A stretch of DNA of 54,654 nucleotides from the NCBI GenBank assembly GCA_002269645.1, contig NIVC01001427.1:227146-281799 (forward strand), in the 5' to 3' direction. The stretch comes from Macrostomum lignano. Its lineage: Eukaryota. Below the pieces are notes generated by a model that was not told where the DNA came from, did no database searches, and worked only from the letters and a program-made list of their open reading frames with translations. Positions within the stretch are counted from its first letter, which is position 1. Every line of letters starts with the position of its first letter. Below, in pieces: positions 38,801-41,800 of the stretch. A program made the position numbers and the translations under genes.

Positions 38801-41800
38801 ACACCAGAGTGAGGGATCTGAGGGACACCAGAGTGAGGGATCTGGGAGACTCCAGAGTGAGGGATCCGGAAGACTCCAGAGTGAGGGATCCGGGAGATAC
38901 CAGAGTGAGGGATCTGGGAGACACCAGAGTGAGGGATCCGGGAGACTCCAGAGTGAGGGATCCGGGAGACTCCAGAGTGAGGGATCCGGGAGACTCCAGA
39001 GTGAGGGATCCGGGAGATACCAGAGTGAGGGATCTGGGAGACACCAGAGTGAGGGATCCGGGAGACTCCAGAGTGAGGGATCCGGGAGACTCCAGAGTGA
39101 GGGATCCGTGAGACTCCAGAGTGAGGGATCCGTGAGACACCAGAGTGAGGGATCCGGGAGACACCAGAGTGAGGCATTTGGGAGACACCAGAGTGAGAGA
39201 TCTGAAGGACTCAGAGTGAGGGATCTGGGAGACACCAAATTGAGGGATCTGCGAGACACCAAATTGAGGGATCTGCGAGACACCAAATTGAGGGATCTGG
39301 GAGACTCCAGAGTGAGGGATCTGGGAGACACCAGAGTGAGGGATCTGGGAGACACCAGAGTGAGGGATCTGGGAGACTCCAGAGTGAGGGATCTGTGGGA
39401 TCTGATGGATGTGATGATGGTGTTTTGCTAGCAGCAAGACCCGCAGACATTCGCACAGCTTGCACTTCCCAACCTCGCCGTAGGACATGACCGAGCGCTA
39501 CTTCCTCGGAATTTTCTGCGTGGAGGCCCTGCTGAAAATCGTGGCCCTGGGTTTCATCATGCACCGCGGCGCCTACCTGCGCAGCATTTGGAACATCATG
39601 GACTTCGTAGTCGTGGTCACGGGGTAAGCACACATGCCAGATTTCACTAATACCGAATTAAGCATTGTATCTTTTACCACTAGAGGCTTTTAACTGTGTT
39701 GAATTTCAAACCCCCAAAAACTGAATTGCTGGAAGCCGCGGTCCTCATGGGCGGCACCTCAGTTTCTTCCATCCAAGCCGAGGGACTTTACAGAACGGGG
39801 TGTAAAGTTTGCGAAATCAATTTGGGCCGGCAGGGAGGCGACTCTCAACACAGGCCGCAGAGCAGAGGGGGCGGCAGCACTTGTCATTCAGAGCGCGGGA
39901 ATTGATCCGGGAGCGGGCCGGGGGGGGCGGCTGTGGGTCCCCGTCTGCCCCTGAGCGACAAAGCCGAGGAAAGCAGAGGGGAGGAGGGGGAGACGAGGAG
40001 CAGCCGGTCTGACCGGTTTTGCTCGGCGCGTCGCCTGAATGTCTCAAGGGATTCGCGAGGCGAGGCGGAGACGAGCAGACAGATTGCTCACAGTGTCCCC
40101 ATGGAGACTGCAGCAGCGCCTTATCCTGTTGGGTGTGGGATTGGTATTGAGCAATCTATGCGGTTGTTGTCAAAACTAAAGTATTTCATTTCGAATTTTG
40201 CAACGAGGGCTTTTTTATGACATGACTCGTGCGCCCTCGGCTTACCCGGCCTTTCGTGCTCATCGCTGCTTATTGATTGAGCCCTCTCGCCTTGTTTTGC
40301 ACGCGGCTTTCAGAGCTGCGCGTCAGCAAAAAATTTTATGCCCAAAGTCTGCCTGCTTGTTTGAGCTTTTAAAGTTCCTCCTTTAAACTGACTGCTCAAA
40401 GTGGCTCAAGTTGGATGGAGAGCCGGCAAACAGAATTCTAAATATAGCTGCCTGTCTTACCTGCCACCGCGCCTCACTCAGCTCTCAGCTCTGCTCTCAG
40501 TCTAGCAGTCCCCCTGCTCACTCAGCTCTCAGTCTAGCAGTCCCCCTGCTCACTCAGCTCTCAGTCTAGCAGTCCCCCTGCTCACTCAGCTCTCAGTCTA
40601 GCAGTTCCCCTGCTCACTCAGCTCTCAGTCTAGCAGTTCCCTTGCTCACTCAGCTCTCAGTCTAGCAGTCCTCCTGCTCACTCAGCTCTCAGTCTAGCAG
40701 TCCCCCAGCTCACTCAGCTCTCAGTCTAGCAGTTCCCCTGCTCACTCAGCTCTCAGTCAAGCAGTTCCCCTGCTCGCTCAGCTCTCAGTCTAGCAGTTCC
40801 CCTGCTCACTCAGCTCTCAGTCTAGCAGTTCCCCTGCTCACTCAGCTCTCAGTCAAGCAGTTCCCCTGCTCACTCAGCTCTCAGTCTAGCAGTTCCCCTG
40901 CTCACTCAGCTCTCAGTCTAGCAGTTCCCCTGCTTGCTCAGCTCTCAGTCTAGCAGTCCTCCTGCTCACACCGCTCTCACTCCAAACTCGCAGGCTGCTG
41001 GCATTCATTCTACCCACATTCGATCAGCCGGCCCTGAGGTCACTCAGGGTCATGCGGCCTCTCAAACTGGTCACCGGGTTTGAGAGTAAGTAGCCATGCA
41101 GTCCCCCGGAGACTGCGCTGTCGGCCAAGCGCGCACACTGCCGCGCAGAAGCCCCGGTTGCAGGTGTCCCAGTCGGGAAGATCAGGCCTCAACACTGCTT
41201 ATATATTGATAAATGTACTTCGTTTGTCTTGTGTACAATATATTAGCGCACTGTCCTAGGCTCAGAGTCCGGCTTTGTAACTGCAGCGAACCCCGACTGG
41301 CCCGGTGAAGTTTTCAAATTTTGTTTTCACACCCAAAGCTTTTGTCCCCCACCGCAAGGCACCCCCTAGACCAACCTCATTCAAAGCACCAATGGCATAT
41401 TTATGCAATGTTCAAGTTGTCTTGTGCATAGGAGAGCCCAGTGCCGGTTGTTGCACTGTGTAGCAGTAAACAACATGCCTGCATACTTAGCTTTAATCAT
41501 AGTTGATTTTGTTTTTCCCCAGTCGGTCAGGCAGACCTGAAGACGCCTCCGTAGACTGCAGAAAGCCAGAAACTGTGTAGCTGAAAGTTGCGCAATCTCT
41601 CAAGCTTTGCATGCCAACCAGCAGCTGCCCTCTGCATCCGAAGCAAAGCTGATGTTGTTTGCTATCGCAACGCGCTCTTTGCAGGTTCGTCACCCTGTTC
41701 GCCTCCAACCAGAGCAGCTTCGACCTGCGGACGCTGCGGGCTGTGCGGGTGCTGCGCCCGCTCAAGCTGGTGTCCGGAATCCCAAGTATAGCAGCCCATC

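Follow-up and report, generated by a model that had tools for sequence, protein, structure and literature searches.

Most invertebrates have a single Cav2 calcium-channel gene for fast transmitter release, and what is known of how its products are diversified comes to date mostly from Drosophila. The fly gene cacophony contains a pair of mutually exclusive exons, IS4A and IS4B, which are reported to be absent from vertebrates, and the choice between them changes the activation voltage (PMC11828482). Only channels containing IS4B reach active zones, those containing IS4A being somatodendritic (PMC11828482; PMC12370356). Here we describe a pair of alternative exons, 5a and 5b, which occupy the same IS3-S4 slot in a Cav2 gene encoded on a 54,654-nucleotide (nt) stretch of Macrostomum lignano DNA (contig NIVC01001427.1; the whole stretch is called the window below). 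In 5a the outermost arginine of the S4 segment (R1) is replaced by proline, and exons of this type are also found in snails and in parasitic flatworms.

The consequences of altering this arginine have been studied in human Cav2.1, where R1 of IS4 is R192, and where R192Q was among the first variants described for familial hemiplegic migraine (PMC9864995). In human embryonic kidney (HEK) cells, R192Q shifts the activation of Cav2.1 leftward (PMC6096772). Voltage sensor I drives opening in Cav2.1 (PMC12019389), and in Cav2.2 G-beta-gamma inhibits it more strongly than the other sensors (PMC11389781). In molluscs, a survey of Aplysia Cav2 recorded five splice sites, none of them in IS4 (PMC5818475).

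The exon pair and its counterparts in other animals

The window is eukaryotic genomic DNA, with short GC-rich exons and with introns rich in minisatellites. On six-frame translation its forward strand carries the 5' half of a gene for a four-domain calcium channel, running from the N-terminus at about 36.3 kilobases (kb) to IIIS1 at about 54.4 kb. The product of exons 4, 5b and 6 matches the human structures of Cav2.2, Cav2.1 and Cav2.3 with expect values (E) of 6e-98, 6e-93 and 4e-89 respectively; the values for Cav1 and Nav are about 4e-68 and about 6e-55. By these matches the gene is a Cav2 (N/P/Q/R-type) calcium channel alpha1 gene, nearer to Cav2 than to Cav1 or Nav. It has a I-II linker with a beta-subunit binding (AID) motif, and pore loops with selectivity-filter glutamates in domains I and II (the latter reading TVFQ/ILTGEDWN); the pore-loop check covers these two domains, III and IV lying beyond the window.

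Exons 5a and 5b are adjacent and homologous, and have the same phase and canonical splice sites, both running from ag/G to A/gt (Table 1). Their coordinates, as given in the original prediction, are exact to the base when compared with the sequence and its translations. The phases, splice sites, frame test and human Cav2 matches likewise uphold its identification of the two as alternative IS3-S4 exons of a Cav2 gene. When the 5b peptide was run against the whole window in six frames using tblastn, it matched 5a at E=7e-6, and no third IS3-S4 copy was found. The spliced product reads ...VVVVTG-, followed by 5a or 5b and then by Ser-LQVVLK from exon 6. With both exons included (193 nt), the frame is shifted and a stop arises in exon 6, and skipping of both shifts the frame too, so that exactly one of them must be spliced in. 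The reading frame thus enforces either/or use of 5a and 5b. Steric exclusion does not explain it, since the 599-nt intron between them permits normal splicing.

The S4 charges of 5b are R1 to R4 followed by K5, and the 23 residues of its S4 and the following elbow are identical to those of human Cav2.1 and Cav2.2. In the alignment, FDLRTLR of 5b stands opposite FDQPALR of 5a, the Leu-Arg pair that contains R1 being replaced by Gln-Pro. The change of the outermost S4 arginine to proline is therefore confirmed, and loss of this arginine is a fixed feature, kept by selection, of the exon type in snails, flatworms and the window. It had been described as deleting a gating charge; the outermost arginine is indeed lost, but by substitution rather than deletion. 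At the elbow, GIPS in 5b becomes GFES in 5a, with replacement of the conserved proline by glutamate, and a serine is additionally replaced by threonine. Overall, 13/22 aligned core residues are identical, and the net charge of the encoded segment is +2 in 5a and +4 in 5b.

Two further differences look otherwise in comparison with other species. Exon 5a is three codons shorter than 5b in its S3-S4 part, as originally noted (92 vs 101 nt). However, human Cav2 likewise has three residues fewer than 5b in this stretch and so equals 5a in length. Because 92 nt is both the invariant length of 5a-type exons (see below) and the length implied for human Cav2, it is 5b that has been lengthened and not 5a that has been shortened. 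The N-Q-S sequon, whose loss from 5a had been pointed out, is in the window found only in 5b. As a functional difference it was rejected: the 5b-type exons of Littorina, contig L003, Paragonimus and Taenia lack it, and it is probably incidental to 5b.

The original prediction had suggested looking for a 5a-type exon in other invertebrate Cav2 genes, and such exons were found in Littorina, in flatworms and in further contigs. A search with the product of exons 4, 5a and 6 retrieved Cav2 fragments containing the pattern (L)LAYILPNLNQPA(L/V)..., from cestodes (Dibothriocephalus, Hydatigera), trematodes (Schistosoma margrebowiei, Opisthorchis, Clonorchis, Echinostoma), a monogenean (Protopolystoma) and a snail (Littorina saxatilis). 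A profile built from the 5a-type exons added five single-exon reading frames on unannotated contigs; this profile search gave 17 candidates, from a protein index that evidently favours short fragments and not full-length annotated isoforms. The genomic loci of the matches were fetched and their exons mapped.

The tandem order, 5a type and then canonical, is common to the window, L. saxatilis L001 and contigs L003 and L009. In every mapped case the 5a-type exon is exactly 92 nt long and runs from ag/N to A/gt, the canonical exon being 101, 104 or 110 nt. In parasitic flatworms with two Cav2 genes, the 5a type is the only IS4 exon of one gene and the canonical type is in the other. Besides the loci in Table 1, protein models from Dibothriocephalus, Hydatigera, Echinostoma and Protopolystoma have the 5a type as their sole IS4 exon. 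These animals therefore have the two sensor types in separate genes, whereas the window, Littorina, L003 and L009 have them as alternative exons of one gene. The parasitic flatworm genes go by the names Cav2A and Cav2B in the literature. Comparison of the window pair with the flatworm genes gives 17-20/22 identical core residues for 5a and 19/22 for 5b. The constitutive exons resemble mollusc and flatworm sequences to about the same degree; the signature residues NIFDC and TGFES lean towards flatworms, without deciding the matter. The protein searches gave no match of 100% identity.

The residues that distinguish the exon types were compared over a 23-residue core, using ten 5a-type, ten canonical and five arthropod alternative exons. 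The 5a type shows fixed differences from the canonical type at five core positions. At position 3, canonical Leu is Gln. At position 4, canonical Arg (R1) is Pro (Ser in L003), with R1 absent from 10/10 of the 5a-type exons. Canonical Val/Ile at position 9 is Leu, canonical Ser at position 19 is Thr/Asn, and canonical Pro at position 22 is Glu (Gln or Ser in two contigs). The last of these is the GIPS proline, at the elbow between S4 and the S4-S5 linker, and its change is as conserved as the loss of R1. Across these alignments the loss of R1 is a conserved, defining property of the 5a exon type and not a quirk of this genome.

Selection on 5a was assessed over 22 core codons, using window 5a as the reference. 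Identities in amino acids, codon position 2 and codon position 3 are respectively 16/22, 20/22 and 7/22 with Littorina; 16/22, 21/22 and 3/22 with L003; 17/22, 22/22 and 4/22 with Schistosoma; 20/22, 22/22 and 4/22 with L004; and 18/22, 21/22 and 5/22 with L007. Third positions are thus saturated while the protein is held, and comparisons of 5b behave alike. Between the gastropod loci L001 and L009, intron identity in 50-nt windows is 25-50%, in effect too low for alignment, while 5a is 82-92% and 5b 92-96% identical. The codon-position pattern and the exon islands show purifying selection on both exons in several lineages.

These results bear directly on the simplest alternative, that 5a is a dead duplicate which is spliced never or by accident, so that the gene makes the 5b channel only. 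An open frame of 30 codons is not rare by itself, 5b is the exon that is identical to vertebrate Cav2, and what is known of 5a splicing comes from reading frame and conservation. But the 92-nt length, AG/GT boundaries, phase and diagnostic residues of 5a are kept in molluscs, flatworms and further contigs, its second codon positions are kept where the third are saturated, and in one flatworm Cav2 gene a 5a-type exon is the sole IS4 exon. As an island of conservation amid introns that cannot be aligned, 5a is not a dead duplicate, and we regard this explanation as extremely improbable. The distribution of the exon instead suggests that a 5a-type sensor supports a working channel that has been kept by selection.

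In the deposited annotation of L. saxatilis L001 (gene models at 10001-16947 and from 22744 onwards), the Cav2 gene is cut in two precisely where the alternative exons lie. The first model runs on past the 5a donor and ends in intron sequence, exon 6 opens the next, and neither includes the canonical exon. Automatic gene prediction seems to fail on the tandem exons, and the pair would explain why Cav2 genes are broken up at this point.

Table 1. Exons and other mapped features of the window and of the compared loci. Slashes mark exon boundaries.
Feature	Sequence	Position	Strand	Length (nt)	Details
Exon 4, constitutive, IS2-IS3	window	39484-39623	+	140	acceptor ccgtag/, donor /gtaagc; ends in phase 2 (GG/)
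Intronic minisatellite	window	40484-40979		 	32-nt unit CTCACTCAGCTCTCAGTCTAGCAGTTCCCCTG, 15.5 copies, 94% matches (Tandem Repeats Finder)
Exon 5a, non-canonical IS3-S4	window	40994-41085	+	92	...actcgcag/G to GAGA/gtaagt
Intron between 5a and 5b	window	41086-41684	+	599	
Exon 5b, canonical IS3-S4	window	41685-41785	+	101	...ctttgcag/G to CCAA/gtatag
Exon 6, constitutive, S4-S5 linker and IS5	window	42961-43107	+	147	starts GC; either exon 5 joins in frame
Exon IIa, IIS3-S4	window	46458-46570	+	113	donor AG/GCAAGT (GC-AG intron)
Exon IIb, IIS3-S4	window	47239-47351	+	113	GT donor
5a-type exon	Littorina saxatilis L001 (CM074573.1)	16779-16870			preceded by exon 4
Canonical IS4 exon	Littorina saxatilis L001 (CM074573.1)	18240-18343			followed by exon 6
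5a-type exon	ENA contig L003	10027-10118			
Canonical IS4 exon	ENA contig L003	10980-11089			follows 5a type
5a-type exon	ENA contig L009 (gastropod)	741-832			
Canonical IS4 exon	ENA contig L009 (gastropod)	2245-2348			follows 5a type
5a-type exon	Schistosoma margrebowiei L002				sole IS4 exon
5a-type exon	JGI contig L007				sole IS4 exon
5a-type exon	Clonorchis and Opisthorchis models				followed by short retained intron and exon 6; no space for a second exon
Canonical IS4 exon	Paragonimus kellicotti L008				only IS4 exon
Canonical IS4 exon	Taenia solium L010				only IS4 exon; intron of about 200 nt after exon 4

Proposed origin and function of 5a

On the basis of these observations, we propose that 5a and 5b are an ancient mutually exclusive pair, and that 5a provides a voltage sensor I with altered gating and an altered response to G proteins in a subset of cells (a reading to which we would give a probability of roughly 0.7). 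A tandem duplication of the IS3-S4 exon, before the divergence of molluscs and flatworms, would have given the spiralian Cav2 gene two mutually exclusive exons. Of these, 5b encodes the canonical sensor I, and 5a a sensor I with no R1, a minimal S3-S4 loop, a glutamate elbow and a net charge two lower. Channels with 5a, used in some cells or compartments, would then differ in activation, which is likely left-shifted, and in their modulation by G proteins. In the parasitic flatworms the two exon types have become fixed in two separate Cav2 genes.

The originally predicted shift in activation voltage or kinetics is supported by analogy with known channels: the lost arginine is the residue mutated in R192Q and lies in the sensor reported to drive Cav2 opening, and the fly IS4A/IS4B choice changes the activation voltage. 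Our best estimate is that 5a channels activate differently, most likely at more negative voltages, and that their response to G proteins is changed as well. Their targeting may also be altered.

Indeed, targeting may be asked to explain more than this. It could be that 5a is a real exon whose main role lies in targeting, in partner binding, or in the sensitivity of sensor I or the S3-S4 loop to modulators or toxins. The precedent is the fly, with its division between active-zone and somatodendritic channels, and 5a differs from 5b beyond R1, at the end of S3, in the S3-S4 loop and at the intracellular elbow (Pro to Glu). R192Q is moreover said, in the title of a 2003 report by Melliti et al., to reduce G-protein inhibition. 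Nevertheless, the change most strictly conserved in 5a takes a gating charge away from the very sensor reported to drive Cav2 opening, and a role other than gating can coexist with a gating effect without excluding one. We therefore think it unlikely, while well worth bearing in mind, that gating is secondary.

Several points weigh against our proposal of an ancient pair with a gating function. Inclusion of 5a in mature messenger RNA, and its strict exclusivity with 5b, are deduced from the reading frame and from conservation. The two exons differ at 9/22 core residues, and R1 may not be the dominant determinant among them. The R192Q shift is absent in Xenopus oocytes and so is system-dependent (PMC9864995), which makes the direction and size of any shift in 5a uncertain. 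The fly IS4 choice also governs active-zone localisation, and the main effect of 5a could likewise be on something other than gating. Finally, at 51640-51655 (+) the reading frame of the window gene changes between ...YYGIRSQ and GGVGQGMAY, at CAGGTGGGG.

This last point raises the question of whether the gene copy in the window is a pseudogene or is misassembled, in which case the exon pair would be uninformative about a working channel in this animal. The exon at issue encodes the pore loop and S6 of domain II, and its apparent 1-nt frameshift, at about 51645-51650, could mean that this copy is damaged. The shift lies within a G-run, however, as is typical of an assembly indel, and is probably one. 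All the other exons looked at have open frames, canonical splice sites and strong conservation. The pair is moreover conserved independently in other species, and the biological conclusion does not depend on the copy in the window. We consider a defective copy very improbable.

Exon 5a is a natural experiment on two parts, R1 and the S4-S5 elbow, of the sensor by which Cav2 opening is driven and on which G-protein inhibition acts. It further predicts that the two flatworm Cav2 genes differ in function.

Splice signals, the second exon pair and other features

The two donors in the window differ in strength, that of 5a (GTAAGT) being strong and that of 5b (GTATAG) weak. The same holds over the four tandem loci (window, L001, L003 and L009), in which the 5a donor is GTAAGT or GTGAGT and the 5b donor GTATAG or GTATGT; the constitutive 5b-type exon of Paragonimus has GTGAGT. 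A weak donor on a canonical exon that has a 5a partner is what regulated splicing predicts, and in this small sample may represent a conserved regulatory signature.

An RNA structure that enforces the either/or choice was sought as inverted repeats within 39624-42960 and was rejected, the search giving pairs of 12-22 nt, none of them convincing. The most suggestive pairs 41129-41141, just past 5a, with 42872-42884, just before exon 6, over 13 nt with one mismatch. By a rough estimate, about three such 13-nt pairs are expected by chance in 3.3 kb.

The 32-nt minisatellite (Table 1) stops 14 nt upstream of the 5a acceptor. Its unit is pyrimidine-rich, and each unit contains CTCAC, branch-point-like and CAG motifs. 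The units could act as decoy 3' splice sites or could be neutral, and a role in the choice of splice site is speculation. No alignable counterpart was found upstream of 5a in the gastropod loci L001 and L009, whose introns cannot be aligned.

Very long minisatellite arrays occur elsewhere in the introns and upstream of the gene (31800-32630, 33180-35005, 38000-39395, 50112-51251 and 53025-53612). Such arrays, one of which repeats a 24-nt unit 58 times, are the dominant part of the non-coding sequence and produce long spurious open reading frames on both strands.

The gene has a second tandem pair of mutually exclusive exons, IIa and IIb, at the corresponding place in domain II (IIS3-S4). They are identical at 66/113 nt, and inclusion of both shifts the frame. 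Their S4 charges are the same, the differences being in S3 and the S3-S4 loop. IIa matches the Paragonimus westermani Cav2 gene L012, which has the IIa type only. IIb matches the Taenia solium gene L010, which has the IIb type only and, as noted above, only the canonical IS4 exon. In P. westermani a canonical IS4 fragment is on a 62.9-kb contig and the IIa gene on a 391-kb contig; being on different contigs, they belong to different genes. The flatworm genes therefore look, as far as these matches go, like 5a with IIa and 5b with IIb, which are the two choice sets of the window gene; the link between 5a and IIa is presumed here.

This would allow a broader proposal, which we put forward tentatively and think rather less likely than not to be correct in full. 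The ancestral spiralian may have drawn two 'virtual' Cav2 channels from a single gene by coordinating the splicing of two voltage sensors, and flatworms may later have hard-wired them as two genes by duplication and reciprocal exon loss.

Upstream of the Cav2 gene, at 10013-10723 and 10953-11171 (+), there is a gene with EF-hand repeats that looks calcyphosine-like when its translation is inspected by eye.

Comparison with known systems

Mutually exclusive domain I S3-S4 exons are also present in vertebrate Nav channels, where exons 5N and 5A form a tandem pair of 92 nt each and tune gating by developmental stage or tissue. That pair alters charge near the sensor. It differs by one to a few residues of the S3-S4 linker, with no loss of an S4 gating charge, and it belongs to a different gene family from 5a and 5b.

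Human CACNA1A R192Q is related in another way. It neutralises the residue that 5a lacks, in an S4 to which that of 5b is identical. However, it is a single pathogenic glutamine substitution in a canonical exon, whereas 5a is a natural exon under selection, with proline at this position and eight further changes, among them Pro to Glu at the elbow.

The closest system is cacophony. It is of the same gene family, its alternative exons (the fly exons 5 and 6, which encode IS4) are in the same IS3-S4 slot, and there too the pair is in tandem, with the canonical exon behind the non-canonical one, and differs in S4 charge content. Both fly exons measure 99 nt, in contrast to the 92 and 101 nt of the window pair. 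The charges themselves also differ. The arthropod alternative exon keeps R1 and has one extra positive charge at the inner end of S4 (VSRIPS or VSKIPS), while 5a has one charge fewer. This ending in (R/K)IPS is found in fragments from Cotesia, Popillia, Tenebrio, Blattella and Dermatophagoides.

Orthology of 5a with arthropod IS4A was considered and rejected, since neither the extra charge nor the diagnostic residues are shared. In arthropods the latter are M5, S8, F9 and K/R20, and in the 5a type they are Q3, P4, L9, T/N19 and E22; none is common to both. The mean core identity of the 5a and arthropod A types is 0.53, which is below the identity of either to the canonical exon. The two would thus seem to be functionally analogous but not demonstrably orthologous, and may go back either to an independent duplication or to a very old one that has since diverged.

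No description of a 5a-type IS4 exon was found in the literature searched, the coverage of which is incomplete, and predicted isoforms may exist in databases. Mutually exclusive IS4 exons of Cav2 as such are known already, from Drosophila. The 5a-type alternative is on these comparisons a different one, which is new and deeply conserved. Molluscs, flatworms and the source animal of the window would thus share an old solution distinct from that of the fly, namely a selected isoform in which sensor I is without the charge that is mutated in migraine.

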